This document shows positions 2,997-37,681 of a DNA stretch of 64,000 bases, in pieces. Every line of letters begins with the position of its first letter. Within the stretch, counting starts at the first letter, position 1. The notes below the pieces were generated by a model. That model was not told the DNA's origin. It saw nothing but the letters and a program-made list of their open reading frames with translations, and did not search any database. The translations under genes and the position numbers were made by a program. The DNA is taken from sequence record OP617745.1. The stretch is one strand, 5' to 3'.

Positions 2997-6339
<3,343 letters not shown>

Positions 6340-30876: not shown

Positions 30877-31752
30877 ATGATTAACGTTATTAAACGTGAT
30901 GGATCAAAAGAACCACTTGACCTTGATAAAATTCACCAGATTTTATTTTTTGCATGTGAAGGTATTTCTGGTGTGTCTGTGTCTGAAATTGAAATTCGTG
31001 CTAAATTGCAATTTCATGAAGGAATTAAAACTTCTGTAATTCATGATATCCTGATTAAAAGTTCATCAGAGCTTATTTCTGAAGATACTCCAAATTATCA
31101 ATACGTAGCGGGTCGTCTTTTGAATTATAGTATTCGTAAAGAAGTTTATGGTCAGTATGAACCAATTCCTTACGGAGAATATGTAAATAACATGGTTCAA
31201 AAAGGTATATACGATCCTATCATTCTGGAAAAATATAATTCAGCAGAAATCGAAGAACTTGGGAAATACATTAAACACAAGCGTGATGATAAATTTACTT
31301 TTGTTGCGATGAGTCAATGGCAAGGTAAGTATCTGTGTAAAAACCGTGTAACTAAAGAAATTTATGAAACACCACAAATGGCTTATATGACTATCGCTGC
31401 TACGATTTTCTCTGAATATAGTACTGAAATTCGTTTGTCATATGTTAAGAAGTTCTATGATGCTATTAGTACTTTTGATATTAGTTTACCAACTCCGATT
31501 ATGTCCGGTCTTCGCACTAATACACGTCAGTTCTCAAGTTGTGTAGTACTGAATGTTGGCGATAGTCTTGATAGTATTGGTTCCAGTAATCATGCAATCT
31601 TGCGTTATATTTCACGTAAAGCAGGGCTTGGTGTTAATATGGGACGTATTCGTGCAATTGATTCTGCAATTCGTGATGGTGATGCAGTACATACTGGTGT
31701 AGTACCATTCTTATCTGCATTAGCAAAAACAGTTAAAAGCTGTTCACAGGGT
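30877..31752 (+). CDS. nrdA: Ribonucleotide reductase class Ia alpha subunit, exon 1 (ATP cone to SCSQG)
   Basis: VIKRDG ATP cone, PTPIMSG, FSSCV, GLGV and KSCSQG motifs; followed directly by an in-frame TAA that is the start of the intron. Confidence 0.95.
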
Positions 31753-32416
31753 TAATAACATAGCCGTCCATATTAGTAATAATATGGAGTATGATCTCTT
31801 TAATTGCTGGGAAATCCTAAAGCCTAAATATAACTTTAATGAAGTGATGAACAAGTTTAGGATGATACAATGGATAATCAGCAGGTAAGTTTTATGAATC
31901 TCTTATCTATACCAAAACATACAGAATATTATACTGATGGTAATGGAAATATCATCAGTACTAAAAGAAATAAAATAAAAACTTTGACTCCGCATTTACA
32001 TTATGGAAGAAGTAAAAATCCATATATGAGAGTAAAAGTTTCAGGGAAACTATATTTGGTGCATAGATTGGTAGCATCAATATTAGTTGGAAGAGAATTA
32101 TATGAAAATGAATATGTAAATCATATTGATGGAAATACGCAAAATAATTCATTATCTAACTTAGAAATAGTAACTCATATTGAAAATGTTCAACACGCCG
32201 TGGAAAATAAATTATATTGCCAAGGCAACGAATGGTATAAAGCACGAAATTTATAAAAAAACTTCAACGACTAGCTCATAGGAGCGTAGCATCAAGTGAT
32301 GCGAAATGGGAGACACCCTACAAATGAGGGTGAAGATATAGTCTAGACTGTATAGAAATATACAGAAGTTCATAAGAGAACTGGTGGTATCTAACGAATA
32401 CCATTGAATATAGTCG
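31753..32416 (+). mobile_element. Group I intron (IA2-like) in nrdA, 664 nt
   Basis: 5' splice site after U and a terminal G. P AATTGCTGGGAA (31802), Q AATCAGCAG (31876), R TTCAACGACTA (32263), S AAGATATAGTCT (32333). P2 with a GTAA loop, P7.1/P7.2, P8 and P9 with a GAAA loop. Splicing gives SCSQG/GVRGGAAT. Confidence 0.93.
31894..32256 (+). CDS. Intron-encoded HNH homing endonuclease
   Basis: VHRLVA...VNHIDGNTQNNSLSNLEIVTHIENVQHA. It lies between the Q and R elements (P6 loop). The start is 31870 or 31894. Confidence 0.85.
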   Translation: MNLLSIPKHTEYYTDGNGNIISTKRNKIKTLTPHLHYGRSKNPYMRVKVSGKLYLVHRLVASILVGRELYENEYVNHIDGNTQNNSLSNLEIVTHIENVQHAVENKLYCQGNEWYKARNL

Positions 32417-33163
32417 GGTGTAAGAGGCGGTGCAGCAACCGCGTATTTCCCAATGTGGCATTTGGAATTTGAAAATATTGTAGTACTGAAAAATAATAAA
32501 GGAACTGAATTTAACCGAGTAAGACAACTGGACTATTGCTTCCAAATCAATAAGACATTATATCAACGATTGATTGATGGAAAAGACATTACATTCTTTA
32601 GCCCACATGATGTTCCTGATCTATATGATGCATTTTGTGCTAATCAAGAAGAATTTGAACGTCTGTATATTAAGTATGAACTCGATGAAACTATTCGTAG
32701 GAAAACTATGCCAGCGATTGAAGCATTTAGTCATCTAATACAAGAGCGTGCAGAAACTGGCCGCATTTATATTCAGAATATTGATAATGCCAATGAGCAT
32801 GGTTCATTTATTCCAGAAATTGCACCAATTGAGCAAAGTAATCTTTGTTGTGTAACTGGTGAAACATTGGTTACTGTATTACTTGATAATAATCAAATGC
32901 AATTACCGATTATTGAAATATTGGATTTGATTGAATCTGGTAAAAATATAAAAGCAATGTCATACAACACAGAAACTGATACATACTCATTTGAAAAAAT
33001 CACGAATGCAATTAAAACAAAATCAGTAACTGAATATTATGAAATTGAAGATGAAAAAGGTAATATTCTTCGTTGTACTGAAGATCATTTGATTTATACA
33101 AAAAATCGTGGATATGTACGTGCTGACGAATTACAAGAAGATGATGAAATAATTTCATTGTAA
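32417..33163 (+). CDS. nrdA: nrdA exon 2 plus the N-half of split intein 1 (end of polypeptide 1)
   Basis: GVRGGAAT, PMWHLE, GRIYIQN and QSNLC, then the intein N-half and a stop codon. Confidence 0.93.
   Translation, partial: GVRGGAATAYFPMWHLEFENIVVLKNNKGTEFNRVRQLDYCFQINKTLYQRLIDGKDITFFSPHDVPDLYDAFCANQEEFERLYIKYELDETIRRKTMPAIEAFSHLIQERAETGRIYIQNIDNANEHGSFIPEIAPIEQSNLCCVTGETLVTVLLDNNQMQLPIIEILDLIESGKNIKAMSYNTETDTYSFEKITNAIKTKSVTEYYEIEDEKGNILRCTEDHLIYTKNRGYVRADELQEDDEIISL
32849..33160 (+). mobile_element. Split intein 1, N-half (104 aa)
   Basis: Block A CVTGETLV and block B LRCTEDHLIYT, then GYVRADELQEDD and a stop; no C-terminal HN in this frame. Confidence 0.9.
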
Positions 33164-33168
33164 TCATA

Positions 33169-33209
33169 GGTAGTGTGATTTCTAATAAATAACATGAAAT
33201 CACACTACC
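33169..33209 (+). promoter_or_regulatory. 14-bp hairpin with TAAATA in the loop, upstream of the GIY-YIG gene
   Basis: GGTAGTGTGATTTC-TAATAAATAACAT-GAAATCACACTACC. Confidence 0.7.
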
Positions 33210-33224
33210 ATTGAGACAACAATA

Positions 33225-33938
33225 ATGAAACAATACGAAGTATATTGTCATACTAATACATTAAACAATAAATCATATATTGGTTATACATCACAGAGTA
33301 CGTTGACGCGTCTACAAAAGCATATTTTAAATGCTAATTATGGCATACAAAGTCATTTTTACCGTGCAATAAGAAAATATGGCATTGAAGTATTCAGTAC
33401 TAAAATATTGTTTAAAACAGATATTTTAGAAGAAGCACTTGAAATGGAAAAATATTATATTAAAGAATATGATTCTATTGTAAATGGATATAATATGACT
33501 TCTGGTGGAACTGGTGGAAATACCCAAATAGGTTTTGATGATGAAAAAATGGAACAATATTTAAATGATTTGTCAAACAGAACTTCATCAGAAAAGAATC
33601 CAAATCATTCAGGTAAAACAGATGATGAAATTGTTGATTTTTATTATAATTTATATATGGAAAATATGAACTGGCTTAGTAGACCTTTTATGCTTAAAGC
33701 AAAAGAAAATGGAATACCACAATCATTTTCTAAATGTAGATTTAATGGTTTAGGGTGGACTGAATTACGAAAACGAATTTTGGAAAAAGTTCAAATAACT
33801 AATCCAGAAATTAAAGAAATAAAATATATTAGAACGAAAGAACATATTGAAAAATTATCAGGTACTCAATTTAAAAAAGGAATTAAGTGGAATGAGCAAC
33901 CTCAAAATAAGAAAAGTAAAGGTGGAAACACCAATTGA
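33225..33938 (+). CDS. Free-standing GIY-YIG homing endonuclease inside split intein 1
   Basis: EVYCHTN...YIGYT...RLQKH...EKYYI...GYNMTSGG. Confidence 0.9.
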   Translation: MKQYEVYCHTNTLNNKSYIGYTSQSTLTRLQKHILNANYGIQSHFYRAIRKYGIEVFSTKILFKTDILEEALEMEKYYIKEYDSIVNGYNMTSGGTGGNTQIGFDDEKMEQYLNDLSNRTSSEKNPNHSGKTDDEIVDFYYNLYMENMNWLSRPFMLKAKENGIPQSFSKCRFNGLGWTELRKRILEKVQITNPEIKEIKYIRTKEHIEKLSGTQFKKGIKWNEQPQNKKSKGGNTN

Positions 33939-34002
33939 TGTTTATGATATCACGGTAGAAAATAATCATAATTTCTTCGCAGATGAAATTTTAGTTCATA
34001 AC
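33892..34002 (+). mobile_element. Split intein 1, C-half (37 aa)
   Basis: Block F VYDITVENNHNFFA and block G ILVHN, with Cys at +1. Confidence 0.92.
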
Positions 34003-34917
34003 TGTGAGATTGACTTACCAAGTTCTCCATTTGAAGATATTAATAATGGTGATGGTCTTATTAGTCTATGTACTTTGAGTGCTATTAACTGGGGTAATTT
34101 TGACAAACCCGAAGATATGGAAGAAGCGTGTGATTTGGCCGTTCGTGCATTAGATGCTATTCTTGATTATCAGGATTATCCAGTTGTTCACGCAGAACGA
34201 GCTACAAAGCTCTATAGGCCGCTTGGTGTTGGTATCATGAGTTTGGCTTACTTCCTTGCTAAACGTGGTTTAAAATACGATACAAACGCATTGAGCACTA
34301 TTAACGAATGGTCAGAAGCGTGGTCTTATTATTTGATTAAAGCATCGGTGAATCTTGCCAAAGAAAAAGGACGCTGTGATGGATTTAATAATACCAAGTA
34401 CTCACAAGGTTTATTCCCTCATGATACTTATAAATCAGATTCATATATTAATGAAGTTGCCCCGTATGAACTAAAACAAGATTGGGATGCACTACGTGAA
34501 GAAATGGTGGAGCATGGTATTCGAAATGCAACTCTACATGCTATTATGCCAGGCGAATGCCAATCGTGGGACAATAAACTAAACACAGTAGAATATGGAA
34601 ATATTGATTTTCATGAATTATGCGAAAAATATGGAATTAATTATGAAGATGTAGAACGTAATGGTATTCCAGATTCATATAATTTAGCACAACCATTAAA
34701 GATTAATACTGCTAATGGTGAAAAAGAAGCGACTCGACTTTATTATAATGGAAACTATGAAATTTATAAATTAACTTTTGATGATGGTAATGAATATTCA
34801 TTTACTGGTAATCATCAACTAAAAGTTATTGAAGATGGTGTTGAATTCTGGTGCAGAGTTGATATGTTAACAGAAAATATGGAAGTTGTTAATATAAATG
34901 AAAAGAATAAAGGATGA
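33892..34917 (+). CDS. nrdA: nrdA polypeptide 2: IntC1 - NrdA middle (185 aa) - IntN2
   Basis: MSNLKIRK...VYDITV...LVHN/CEIDLP, SLCTLSAINWG, RPLGVG, NATLHAIMPGE/CQSWD. The ATG at 33892 follows an AAGGA/GTGGA RBS. Confidence 0.92.
   Translation: MSNLKIRKVKVETPIDVYDITVENNHNFFADEILVHNCEIDLPSSPFEDINNGDGLISLCTLSAINWGNFDKPEDMEEACDLAVRALDAILDYQDYPVVHAERATKLYRPLGVGIMSLAYFLAKRGLKYDTNALSTINEWSEAWSYYLIKASVNLAKEKGRCDGFNNTKYSQGLFPHDTYKSDSYINEVAPYELKQDWDALREEMVEHGIRNATLHAIMPGECQSWDNKLNTVEYGNIDFHELCEKYGINYEDVERNGIPDSYNLAQPLKINTANGEKEATRLYYNGNYEIYKLTFDDGNEYSFTGNHQLKVIEDGVEFWCRVDMLTENMEVVNINEKNKG
34558..34914 (+). mobile_element. Split intein 2, N-half (119 aa)
   Basis: Begins CQSWDNKL after MPGE; block B SFTGNHQLKV, then WCRVDML and a stop. 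Confidence 0.88.
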
Positions 34918-35869
34918 ATTAAAATGTAATCAATATAATAGCCAAGAATTGTACTTGGCTATATTTGAATATTATAAGAATTTAAAAAATAAGCAAAGTA
35001 AAAAATTTAGAAAATATGTAGAAGAATCTAGATTATATAATATTGAATCTATGAAAAAGTTCTTTGCACTACAGGGTCATGGTATTGCTTATAAACCGGA
35101 ATATTATATGTATCTTCATTGTGTTGATGAAAAACAAGCTAATGAATATTTGAACATAATGATGGAAAATAAAAAAACCTCTAAAGAAAATTTTATTAAA
35201 AAGCATGGCATGGAAAAAGGTACATTATTGTGGAATGAATTTAAGAATAAAACATTAAATAAAACTCCAACTCGTGGAACTATGTATTTTACGGGTAATA
35301 ACGAACTTGATAAAATGCTATCATCATTATATAGAAAGATAACAAATAAAAGGTGTATAGAATATTATTTACACAATTATGATATTTCATATGAAAAAGC
35401 ATTAGAGTTGCAATTAAATTATCAAAAAGAAAATTCTGGTGTATTTGGAGAATATTATGAACTTAGAGATTTATCACATAAACCTAAATTTGATCATACG
35501 TTTGAAGTTACACAAGAATGCATACGTAAACGCCAAATATCAAAAAATAAACTTGGGAAATGTGTACATCCTGATGATAAAAAAGAATGGGAAAAATATA
35601 GAAATAAAGTATGTTCGTTAACAAGAAAAGAAATTTATATTTCTGAATTAGAAAATTATGATTTATATATAAAAAACCCAAACGAATGGCATCTGGATCA
35701 TATTGTATCTAAAATACATGGATTTTTAAACTCGGTACCACCGGAAATAATTGCTTCTATTCATAATTTACAGATTATTCCAGCTAAAGAGAATATAGCA
35801 AAAAACTATAGAAGTAATATGGACATTAATGATTTATTAAGGATATATAATGAAAATCGTAAAAATTGA
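34898..35869 (+). CDS. Free-standing HNH homing endonuclease inside split intein 2
   Basis: C-terminal HLDHIVS...HNLQIIPAKENIAKN; overlaps both flanking nrdA pieces by 20 nt. Confidence 0.8.
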   Translation: MKRIKDELKCNQYNSQELYLAIFEYYKNLKNKQSKKFRKYVEESRLYNIESMKKFFALQGHGIAYKPEYYMYLHCVDEKQANEYLNIMMENKKTSKENFIKKHGMEKGTLLWNEFKNKTLNKTPTRGTMYFTGNNELDKMLSSLYRKITNKRCIEYYLHNYDISYEKALELQLNYQKENSGVFGEYYELRDLSHKPKFDHTFEVTQECIRKRQISKNKLGKCVHPDDKKEWEKYRNKVCSLTRKEIYISELENYDLYIKNPNEWHLDHIVSKIHGFLNSVPPEIIASIHNLQIIPAKENIAKNYRSNMDINDLLRIYNENRKN

Positions 35870-35954
35870 AAAAAATGGAATAAAACCAACTTGGGATATT
35901 GAAGTCCCTGATGGAAATGAATATGTTCTTCCAAATGGTATTGTATCTCATAAT
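35850..35954 (+). mobile_element. Split intein 2, C-half (35 aa)
   Basis: Block F TWDIEVP and block G IVSHN, with Thr at +1. Confidence 0.92.
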
Positions 35955-36407
35955 ACATCATCACAAATTAGTAATAGTACTGCTGGTATTGAAAAGATTC
36001 GTTCTCTTGTAACAGTAAAAACTTCTAAAGATGGTGTTCTTAAACAAGTTGTACCTGAAATTTCAAAATTAAAGAACAAATATGACCTACTATGGGAACA
36101 ATCTGATAATATTGGTTATCTTCAGGTGTGTGGTGTTATGCAGAAATATATGGATCAAGGTATAAGTACTAATACGAGTTATAATCCTGAAAAGTTCCAA
36201 GATGGAAAAGTGCCAATGTCAGTACTGTTAACAGAACTCCTAATGGCTTATAAACTTAACGCGAAACAACTTTATTATCATAACGTGTTGGATAATGCTT
36301 CTGAAGTTGATATTGACAAATATATGGAAGAAAAAAATAAATTAACAAAAAATGATATTGTTTTGCCTGAGCTACCAGAAGATGATTGTGAGAGTTGTAA
36401 ATTGTAA
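35850..36407 (+). CDS. nrdA: nrdA polypeptide 3: IntC2 - NrdA C-terminus (150 aa)
   Basis: MKIVKIEK...TWDIEV...IVSHN/TSSQISNST, DQGISTN, LYY and the terminal CESCKL. Confidence 0.93.
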   Translation: MKIVKIEKNGIKPTWDIEVPDGNEYVLPNGIVSHNTSSQISNSTAGIEKIRSLVTVKTSKDGVLKQVVPEISKLKNKYDLLWEQSDNIGYLQVCGVMQKYMDQGISTNTSYNPEKFQDGKVPMSVLLTELLMAYKLNAKQLYYHNVLDNASEVDIDKYMEEKNKLTKNDIVLPELPEDDCESCKL

Positions 36408-36503: not shown

Positions 36504-36529
36504 AAATCCCACAATTACGTGGGATTTTT
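36504..36529 (+). terminator. Intrinsic terminator
   Basis: AAATCCCAC-AATTAC-GTGGGATTTTT. Confidence 0.7.
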
Positions 36530-36556: not shown

Positions 36557-37681
36557 ATGTCAGTGTTTCAAAAAAATACAAAATCACATTTAGAAAAGAA
36601 TATGTTTTTTGATGAAGCGGTAGATATCCAACGCTTTGAAACTAATAAGTATTCTACCATTGAGAAATTAACCGAACAACAAAAAGGATTTTTCTGGAGT
36701 CCAGGTGAAGTTGATGTAAATAAAGACAAAATTGATTTTGCTAAATTATCCGAAGCGGAAAAGCATATTTTCACTTCCAACCTCAAACGTCAGATACTAC
36801 TTGATTCAGTACAGGGTCGTGGTCCAAACACAGTACTTCTACCACTGGCTTCGTTACCAGAAGTAGAAAATTTTATTGAAACTTGGGCGTTCTTTGAAGG
36901 TGCAATTCATAGTAAATCATATACTCATATTATTCGTAACATCTACACCAATCCATCTGAAGTGTTTGATACTATGCTTGATATTCCTGAAATTCTGGAT
37001 TGTGCCGTTGACGTATCTAAGTACTATGATGATTTAGAAGAATACGGTACTTGGTATCGTATGCTTGGTGTTGGTACACATACAATCAATGGCAAAGAAC
37101 TTGTTATTGACATGTATGAACTAAAAAAGAAACTATGGTTGTGCTTAAATTCCATTAACGTATTGGAGGGTATACGATTTTATGTCTCATTCTCTGCATC
37201 CTTTGCATTTGGTGAAAATAAAATCATGGAAGGTAGTGCCAAGATCATTAGACTAATTGCGAGGGATGAGTCTCTCCATTTAGCAGCAACTCAAATGATT
37301 CTTCGTTTGTTGAAAAAAGAAGATCCAGACTTTGTTAAAATTTCTGAAGAATGCTATGATGAAGTCCAGAGTATGTTCCTGGATGCTATTAAGCAAGAAG
37401 AAGACTGGGCTGATTATCTATTTAAAGATGGTTCTATTATCGGTCTTAATGCTGAAATACTAAAACAGTATGTTCGCTGGATTGGATCTAAACGTATGGC
37501 CGCAGTTGGAATTAAGTGTCCATATGCTGTAACAAAAAATAGCCCACTCCCATGGATGGAACATTGGATTAGTAGTGCGGGTGTGCAGGTTGCACCACAA
37601 GAAACTGAAATTAGTTCTTATGTAATTGGTGGAATTAAAGCAGATATTACAGAAAACACGTTCAGTTCATTTAAACTATAA
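36557..37681 (+). CDS. nrdB: Ribonucleotide reductase class Ia beta subunit
   Basis: FWSPGEV, LDSVQGR, IHSKSY, LEGIRFYVSF and RDESLH motifs and a PQETEISSY tail; uninterrupted. Confidence 0.96.
   Translation: MSVFQKNTKSHLEKNMFFDEAVDIQRFETNKYSTIEKLTEQQKGFFWSPGEVDVNKDKIDFAKLSEAEKHIFTSNLKRQILLDSVQGRGPNTVLLPLASLPEVENFIETWAFFEGAIHSKSYTHIIRNIYTNPSEVFDTMLDIPEILDCAVDVSKYYDDLEEYGTWYRMLGVGTHTINGKELVIDMYELKKKLWLCLNSINVLEGIRFYVSFSASFAFGENKIMEGSAKIIRLIARDESLHLAATQMILRLLKKEDPDFVKISEECYDEVQSMFLDAIKQEEDWADYLFKDGSIIGLNAEILKQYVRWIGSKRMAAVGIKCPYAVTKNSPLPWMEHWISSAGVQVAPQETEISSYVIGGIKADITENTFSSFKL

Follow-up and report, generated by a model that had tools for sequence, protein, structure and literature searches.

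Three polypeptides and two different split inteins for the large subunit of ribonucleotide reductase in Klebsiella phage KP13-7

Introduction

What lies between 'nrdA_1' and 'nrdA_2' in the genome of the Klebsiella jumbo phage KP13-7 (OP617745.1, Alcyoneusvirus, 357.7 kb)? In the record, the open reading frames (ORFs) separating these genes are annotated as hypothetical proteins. We analysed a window of 64,000 nucleotides (nt), which is 100% identical to the KP13-7 record and shares its coordinates. Our focus was the ORF at 33892-34917 (+ strand, ATG start, 341 amino acids (aa)), corresponding to coding sequence DIDNDMLP_00041. In KP13-7, the large subunit of ribonucleotide reductase (RNR), called NrdA, is encoded as three separate proteins. 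Of the three interruptions in the gene, one is a probable group I intron, which carries an HNH gene; the others are split intein 1, accompanied by a GIY-YIG gene, and split intein 2, accompanied by an HNH-like gene. We consider it likely, from the sequence comparisons below, that ORF 33892-34917 specifies the central chain of a three-chain NrdA, joined by two independent protein trans-splicing reactions. This would be natural tandem trans-splicing.

Results

The middle chain is an NrdA fragment between halves of two inteins

A preliminary description of the locus placed the C-terminal half of one split intein (IntC1) at the start of this 341 aa ORF, and the N-terminal half of another (IntN2) at its end. 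Profile matches, and comparison with the NrdA protein of phage RaK2, bear this out. Briefly, IntC1 accounts for 37 aa and IntN2 for 119 aa. Between them is an NrdA extein of 185 aa, the length previously proposed and also found by comparison with RaK2 NrdA. Residues 38-231 of the chain match positions 440-633 of NF006578, a class Ia NrdA profile (E 6e-62). A Foldseek search of the Protein Data Bank (PDB), using a model of the middle chain, returned only structures of the RNR large subunit (R1), with E. coli R1 as the top matches, and was uninformative on the intein parts. The pieces that make up the three chains are as follows.

30877-31752 (+): nrdA exon 1, 292 codons, ending ..SCSQG; Pfam PF03477, PF00317 and PF02867; 98.5% nt identity to nt 1-875 of RaK2 nrdA
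32417-32848 (+): nrdA exon 2, the remaining N-extein, 144 codons, ending ..QSNLC; NF006578 positions 308-440 (E 7e-62); RaK2 residues 293-436
32849-33163 (+): IntN1, N-half of split intein 1, 104 aa and a stop codon (coding 32849-33160, stop 33161); TIGR01445, PF14890 and NrdJ-1 (PDB 8UBS)
33892-34002 (+): IntC1, C-half of split intein 1, 37 aa, ending ..LVHN and followed by Cys; TIGR01443 (33.9 bits) and PF14890 positions 120-155 (E 7e-10)
34003-34557 (+): middle extein, 185 aa, CEIDLP ... IMPGE; NF006578 (E 6e-62); RaK2 NrdA residues 437-621
34558-34917 (+): IntN2, N-half of split intein 2, 119 aa and a stop codon (coding 34558-34914), beginning CQSWDN and with block B TGNH; exact insertion relative to RaK2, and contiguous homologues
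35850-35954 (+): IntC2, C-half of split intein 2, 35 aa, ending ..VSHN and followed by Thr+1; TIGR01443 (19.7 bits)
35955-36407 (+): C-extein, 150 aa and a stop codon, beginning TSSQIS, where Thr is the +1 nucleophile; NF006578 positions 620-751 (E 7e-50); RaK2 residues 622-771

All pieces of nrdA are open, collinear, and on the same strand. Exon 1 encodes the ATP-cone, the all-alpha domain, and the start of the barrel. Uninterrupted nrdA genes are present in phages RaK2, K64-1 and Muenster (96.7% nt identity) and RaK2 NrdA is 771 aa long. The four extein pieces of KP13-7, which align with RaK2 residues 1-291, 293-436, 438-621 and 622-771, also total exactly 771 aa. Compared to RaK2, the middle extein is 89.1% identical at the nt level, versus 98% for the remaining exteins, a difference that we attribute to co-conversion tracts. 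Residue 437 is Gln in RaK2 and Cys in KP13-7, where it is the +1 nucleophile of intein 1.

Both breaks coincide with split inteins

Intein 1 has both splicing regions, on separate chains (stop at 33161, new ATG at 33892), and relatives have an in-frame empty site. IntN1 begins CVTGE and has the block B sequence TEDH. It scores 31.5 bits with TIGR01445, for which the cut-off is 24.5 bits, and 35.8 bits with PF14890, which is at the cut-off. For TIGR01443, matched by both C-halves, the cut-off is 15.6 bits. The insert is missing from RaK2 and phage phiKp_21, which both read SNLC/QEIDLP (here, and below, a slash marks the junction). Compared with the split intein NrdJ-1 (PDB 8UBS), IntN1 gives E 1e-17 and IntC1 gives E 0.0035. 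Judged by these alignments, intein 1 and NrdJ-1, which is an ultrafast split intein, are related.

The thiyl-radical Cys, at the end of exon 2, is the -1 residue of this junction. Dassa et al. place the NrdJ insertion point after the thiyl Cys, one residue past their NrdA site (PMC2677866), and intein 1 of KP13-7 occupies this NrdJ site. We rejected an alternative first junction, SNL/CC, because the spacing from the thiyl Cys to the catalytic Glu would be shortened by one residue, and block A would be out of its usual register. A TTG start for the middle chain, at 33847, was rejected because homologues start at the Met that gives an IntC of 33-37 aa. Note that the insertion site has moved by one residue within the intein 1 family. 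Two metagenome phage contigs, L004 and L005, have the intein before the thiyl Cys (SNL/C..HN/CxE); KP13-7, L006, L090 and phage WX1 have it after (SNLC/C..HN/CE). Separately, the uninterrupted nrdA genes of IMG/VR loci L029 and L016 (at around locus positions 4440-4500) read SNLCCEI, with a +1 Cys and no intein. Such alleles are either a pre-adapted homing site or the scar of precise intein loss.

In the case of intein 2, IntN2 is an exact in-frame insertion, relative to RaK2 NrdA, at MPGE/TSSQIS. The C-half, IntC2, starts a separate chain, has a His-Asn end, and is followed by a +1 Thr at the same empty site of RaK2. The sequence AAGGA is 7 nt upstream of the IntC2 ATG. Contiguous forms of intein 2 exist (P0002, P0017 and phage CP220) and have Hint and intein signatures. 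When modelled with AlphaFold2 (AF2), IntN2 forms a beta-rich domain with predicted local distance difference test (pLDDT) values of 72-90, rising to 76-94 together with the C-half. We assign the last 119 aa of the middle chain to IntN2 because of the exact insertion relative to RaK2, the invariant Cys1 and block B Thr and His, the contiguous homologues, and the cognate IntC2 on the next chain.

The two inteins are very likely orthogonal

The IntC1-extein-IntN2 layout requires functional orthogonality of the two inteins. The preliminary description reasoned that cross-pairing would either cyclise the middle chain, giving a circular 185-aa product, or join chain 1 directly to chain 3 and skip the middle of the enzyme. 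This logic is sound. It had also taken the halves on the middle chain to be non-cognate, in agreement with our comparisons; IntN1 and IntN2 are 25% identical, IntC1 and IntC2 are 26% identical, and intein 1 is NrdJ-1-like whilst intein 2 is without a close solved relative. By these measures inteins 1 and 2 are different families, and we consider their orthogonality very likely. In published work, 15 of 16 tested split inteins, NrdJ-1 included, were mutually orthogonal (PMC7090010). Similarly, according to a study of NrdJ-1, there is no cross-reaction between split intein families (bioRxiv 10.64898/2026.03.03.709324). In the AF2 model of the middle chain (a single chain, with a shallow alignment) IntC1 has pLDDT values below 50 and is unplaced, while IntN2 of the same chain is folded (72-90). 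In a control, P0002, the cognate C-half of intein 2 has pLDDT values of 76-94 and IntC1 is again not confident.

A further suggestion, that the pair could be co-selected, is doubtful for this lineage. Phage phiKp_21 has intein 2 alone, with the same 153-nt tract beside it (described below). In addition, IntC1 and IntN2 distances have a rho of only 0.18, and inteins of different families are generally not cross-reactive (PMC7090010; bioRxiv 10.64898/2026.03.03.709324). Since the two inteins were gained separately in this lineage, their orthogonality probably reflects what is normal for unrelated inteins, and not co-selection. That the pair would work together is argued by its recurrence in many diverged phages, with all splicing residues invariant.

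The arrangement recurs in diverged phages

With the middle chain, we retrieved the 120 best protein clusters (90% identity) and assigned layouts by eye. IntC1-extein-IntN2 chains, of 319-349 aa and 41-54% identity, were found in at least 35 of these 120 closest clusters. In an alignment of 32 chains, Asp19 (block F), Asn37, Cys38 (+1), Cys223 (Cys1 of IntN2), Thr305 and His308 (both block B) are invariant. The RNR active-site residues are likewise invariant across the 32 chains. The five-gene order of KP13-7 is repeated in contigs L004 and L005, and its three chains in a cultured phage, Campylobacter phage vB_CjeM_WX1. Endonuclease genes are not always present; contig L006 has none in split 1 and, in L018 and L019, which are split at both sites, the two gaps are both without one. 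Each intein is also found alone or contiguous (P0002, P0061, P0017, CP220, CPt10 and CP21) and Campylobacter phages have relatives of both inteins at the same two sites. Note that our scan of IMG/VR with the middle-chain alignment ranks loci by extein similarity, and 66 of 80 loci are uninterrupted nrdA, so this is a biased estimate of frequency.

Pairwise divergence of IntN2 correlates with that of the extein (rho 0.57, Mantel p 0.001), and IntC1 and IntN2 are weakly correlated. These correlations fit long residence with largely independent histories.

Two side observations concern the chains retrieved. In contigs L018 (4465-5704) and L019 (4371-5610) the middle chain is in two overlapping frames. 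This frameshift, real or an assembly error, is identical in the two contigs, which are from related samples. Nine other chains (P0062, P0092, P0098, P0101, P0103, P0106, P0111, P0114 and P0044) are about 310-318 aa long, have IntN2 at the end, and start with a very acidic non-intein peptide around 20 residues past the thiyl Cys. These seem to combine split intein 2 with an intein-free split of NrdA near site 1, of the kind known from phage Aeh1.

Three interruptions, probably gained separately

Phage phiKp_21 has split intein 2 alone and hence a two-chain NrdA. Across extein nt 1-1710, phiKp_21 and RaK2 are identical, save three scattered differences; the 153 nt immediately upstream of the insertion then have 21 differences. 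KP13-7 is identical to phiKp_21 within this 153-nt tract, and only 1 nt in 1397 distinguishes them across intein 2 and its ORF. Two further sets of differences are unique to KP13-7; 41 lie in a tract (extein nt 1261-1710) that surrounds the intein 1 site and extends downstream of it, and 9 flank the site of the intron. We read these as the co-conversion tracts expected from homing, marking three separate elements. The Gln to Cys change at residue 437 would have created the +1 nucleophile at site 1.

Because phiKp_21 has intein 2 alone, with the same 153-nt tract, the two inteins either entered the lineage separately or can move separately. The pattern would be explained if intein 1 joined a phage already having intein 2, or if intein 2 later moved alone. 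RaK2, phiKp_21 and KP13-7 have none, one, and three insertions respectively, each with what appears to be its own co-conversion tract. The series would be an unusually clean stepwise record of homing elements breaking a gene without killing it.

Introns, endonuclease genes and nrdB

The remaining elements of the locus are listed here.

31753-32416 (+): probable group I intron, 664 nt; Rfam RF00028 at 32153-32365 (43.3 bits, E 1e-8, gathering score 50); exon junction from sequence
31870-32256 (+): HNH_3 homing-endonuclease ORF inside the intron; PF13392 (E 6e-12) and PHROG HNH endonuclease families
33153-33230 (+): RNA hairpin in the 61-nt spacer; minimum free energy -28.5 kcal/mol, z = -8.1, 0/200 shuffles equally stable
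33225-33938 (+): free-standing GIY-YIG homing-endonuclease gene, 237 aa, between the intein 1 halves; PF01541 (E 4e-7), TIGR01453 (E 2e-11) and PHROG 314 (E 3e-25)
34898-35869 (+): free-standing 323-aa ORF between the intein 2 halves, a putative HNH-like (His-Me finger) homing endonuclease; PHROG 5104 (E 2e-14) and endonuclease VII family (E 3e-4)
36557-37681 (+): nrdB, small subunit, intact, partner of the spliced NrdA; PF00268 (E 2e-46)

A U precedes the 5' splice site of the intron, and G is the final intron base. As read from the sequence, removal of the intron restores SCSQG/GVRGGAAT exactly as in uninterrupted RaK2. The intron site, SCSQG/GVRGG (31752/31753), recurs; the unrelated metagenome ORFs P0003 and P0016 start precisely at the exon 2 boundary. 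This points to introns at the same position of nrdA in other phages.

The hairpin between IntN1 and the GIY-YIG gene has an inner stem of 14 perfect pairs (33169-33182 with 33196-33209). In the outer stem, the end of the chain 1 ORF pairs with the GIY-YIG start codon (33225). Hairpins 5' of endonuclease genes were described by Dassa et al. in 2009 (PMC2677866). Rfam matches to mir-23 at 33152-33225, on both strands, are spurious and caused by this strong hairpin. The last 47 nt of the GIY-YIG gene are shared with the start of the middle chain.

The 323-aa ORF overlaps each neighbouring ORF by 20 nt. Searches of Pfam, NCBIfam and PDB gave no match to it. Homologues are in the same position in L004 (7063-8178, E 3e-17) and L005 (7025-7891, E 3e-21). 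The family, as sampled in the window, L004 and L005, has 25-27% identity and a C-terminal LDH...NL..IP..EN motif. Fractured genes are known with GIY-YIG and Vsr-like homing endonucleases, and this family is a candidate for a third type.

A promoter scan showed no enrichment (51 found versus 46 expected) and no sign of separate promoters. Between the end of nrdA (36407) and nrdB (36557), at window positions 36504-36527, there is a hairpin of 9-10 bp with a T-run after it, which can be read on either strand; this is a terminator-like or attenuator-like element within the operon. The nrdB gene is intact in KP13-7 and RaK2. In phiKp_21 (L002 5353-7563), it is interrupted, at GENKIMEG/NAKIIRL, by an insert of around 1 kb. 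Within the insert is a 248-aa ORF with many CxxC pairs, and the whole is probably a further intron that carries an endonuclease gene.

Discussion

A scheme for assembly of NrdA

From the anatomy, empty sites, family assignments, catalytic-residue conservation and recurrence described above, we infer splicing, its order, and its orthogonality as follows. The nrdA-nrdB region would be transcribed and the group I intron would remove itself, so that exons 1 and 2 specify chain 1, consisting of the 436-aa N-extein and IntN1. For the middle chain (IntC1, the 185-aa extein, IntN2) and chain 3 (IntC2, the 150-aa C-extein), translation would begin at separate start codons, each lying within the end of one of the two homing-endonuclease genes. 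IntN1 would then pair with IntC1, and IntN2 with IntC2, each rebuilt HINT domain being expected to perform class-1 splicing. In this chemistry, a Cys1 thioester would be attacked by Cys+1 (intein 1) or Thr+1 (intein 2), followed by cyclisation of the terminal Asn. The predicted product is a 771-aa NrdA, differing from RaK2 at residue 437 (Gln to Cys) and at sites within the co-conversion tracts. Cyclisation of the middle extein, and the chain 1-chain 3 skip product, would be avoided since the inteins are of different families and should not complement each other. By reference to E. coli R1, we place both insertion points at the active site; one after the thiyl-radical Cys and the other in the PGE-TSS substrate loop. 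Hence, no single chain or half-spliced intermediate should be active.

Weighing the alternatives

Several points weigh against this scheme. The intron score of 43.3 bits is below the Rfam gathering score. For intein 2, the TIGR01445 match to residues 233-310 of the middle chain is just 15.6 bits, below the 24.5 bit cut-off, with no Pfam match, and no solved relative was found at better than E 0.05. The AF2 result, from a single chain with a shallow alignment, is a weak test of pairing. Charge polarity does not differ between the two pairs; net charge is -4 over the final 30 residues of each IntN and +3 over the initial 15 of each IntC. Therefore, electrostatic steering would not keep the pairs apart, and some non-cognate encounter complexes, with low-level mispairing, are conceivable. 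Finally, RNR is also supplied by the host, so that the phage might survive for a time with a dead nrdA, and selection on the KP13-7 copy is not measurable because the insertions are recent in the lineage.

The last point bears on whether the gene is simply decaying. Endonuclease invasions could have broken nrdA, leaving pieces that are not joined, a phage that uses host RNR, and a middle ORF that is a functionless by-product. The similarly interrupted nrdA gene of CPt10 has a pseudogene annotation, and Dwivedi et al. (2013) considered the nrdA genes of Campylobacter phages to be degenerating (PMC3653736). Consistent with this, the KP13-7 insertions are recent (96.7% identity to the uninterrupted RaK2 gene), and the L018 and L019 middle chains are in two overlapping frames. 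However, the KP13-7 pieces are open, ordered, on one strand and sum to exactly 771 aa, adjacent nrdB is intact, and the layout persists in L006, L018 and L019 without an endonuclease gene in the gap. Moreover, invariance of splicing and RNR active-site residues, across 32 chains at 41-54% identity, requires purifying selection. We regard decay as very unlikely. Purely non-covalent assembly, with intein halves acting only as docking modules and three unspliced chains forming an active complex, has a precedent in NrdA-a/NrdA-b of Aeh1, a fragmented NrdA that works without ligation (PMC3045599; described in PMC2677866). Furthermore, in some metagenome chains IntN2 occurs together with an acidic N-terminus that is not from an intein, and intein-free splits near site 1 seem to exist. 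Even so, going by E. coli R1, intein domains of around 140-155 aa at the active site would obstruct it. Docking alone would not need the strictly conserved Cys1, block B Thr and His, terminal His-Asn, and +1 nucleophiles, and the Gln to Cys change supplied just such a nucleophile at site 1. Hence, we give this explanation hardly any weight.

Appreciable cross-reaction would yield a cyclic middle extein, or a chain 1-chain 3 skip product, in real amounts. Such products might be tolerated waste, or might have a role, for example as a dominant-negative RNR regulator. The shared charge polarity of the IntN tails and IntC heads would allow this; both inteins are canonically split HINT domains with similar block F and G motifs, and Pinto et al. 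saw some cross-reaction in special cases, namely atypical split sites (PMC7090010). Conversely, the families differ (25-26% identity), published matrices show orthogonality between families as the rule, AF2 does not dock IntC1 on IntN2, and the pair persists over long evolutionary distances. Cross-reaction on this scale is therefore improbable. Taken together, the invariant splicing residues and exact extein arithmetic make all three alternatives less likely than joining of three chains by tandem trans-splicing.

Significance

Ligation of proteins from three fragments is limited by having few fast, mutually orthogonal split inteins that tolerate their junctions. The main interest of our findings is as a source of natural pairs, already matched within one protein and represented by numerous sequence variants. 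NrdJ-1, among the best current tools, is a relative of one partner; the other is from an uncharacterised family with a native Thr at +1. On balance, we lean slightly towards a broader view. Here, the NrdJ-1-like intein and the 'CQS' intein would be a widespread natural tandem trans-splicing system, and NrdA the first described cellular or viral protein made from three polypeptides via two orthogonal split inteins. Metagenomes would then hold dozens of diverged compatible pairs, and intein 2 would be a new efficient family with Thr or Ser at +1. In Klebsiella and Campylobacter phages, the sequences suggest that annotations such as 'hypothetical' or 'pseudogene' probably conceal working RNR genes.

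Comparison with known systems

Our searches of open-access text turned up no natural gene described as having two split inteins; the truncated DnaE-1 locus of Dassa et al. (PMC2677866) comes closest. The same work described fractured genes, in which a split intein has a free-standing endonuclease gene between its halves (NrdA-1 to NrdA-7, NrdJ-1 and NrdJ-2), with one break per gene. Each KP13-7 break is alike, in that an N-part with IntN, an endonuclease gene, and an IntC with C-part are on one strand of a phage nucleotide-metabolism gene. In the first break, the GIY-YIG gene is also preceded by a spacer hairpin. Unlike these examples, KP13-7 has two breaks in one gene, producing an internal chain flanked by halves of different inteins, and the ORF in the second break is HNH-like, rather than belonging to either of the two families in the paper (GIY-YIG and Vsr-like). 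We conclude that KP13-7 nrdA extends the known fractured-gene arrangement to two split inteins in one gene.

NrdJ-1 (PDB 8UBS, 9OMB) aligns with IntN1 over 91 residues (E 1e-17), around 40% being identical by count on the alignment. The two inteins share their position relative to the thiyl-radical Cys, a canonical split site, and an acidic IntN tail. However, intein 1 is a separate, uncharacterised member of the family; its host is a class Ia NrdA, not a class II NrdJ, and its +1 residue is Cys, whereas NrdJ-1 has an obligate Ser (bioRxiv 10.64898/2026.03.03.709324).

Other phage RNR genes are multiply interrupted. Examples are SPbeta nrdE, with an intron and an intein, Brochothrix phage A9, and Campylobacter phages CPt10, CP21, IBB_35 and WX1 (reviewed in PMC3653736). 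As in KP13-7, introns, inteins and endonuclease genes accumulate in one RNR gene. In SPbeta and A9, unlike KP13-7, the inteins are contiguous and, for the Campylobacter cases, the open-access literature describes disrupted or degenerating genes, not three-chain trans-splicing. The nrdA gene of Aeh1 is also cut by a homing-endonuclease gene (mobE) into separately translated chains. Yet Aeh1 has no intein and assembly is non-covalent, whereas each break in KP13-7 is flanked by intein halves with intact catalytic residues.

Engineered systems provide the closest parallels to the middle chain. SICLOPPS is an engineered IntC-target-IntN fusion, having cognate halves, that cyclises its target. The preliminary description called the middle chain 'SICLOPPS-like', and this is apt for the order of modules on one polypeptide. 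It does not extend to cognate halves since, in KP13-7, IntC1 belongs with IntN1 and IntN2 with IntC2. Hence, the natural chain has non-cognate halves, and linear ligation of three pieces, rather than cyclisation, is expected. Engineered tandem trans-splicing (PMC7090010; PMC12707363) has an identical design for the middle fragment, and the same need for inteins that do not cross-react. Such systems are assembled by hand, from inteins of unrelated genes. By contrast, the KP13-7 pair is in its native gene, at native junctions, and exists in many diverged versions.

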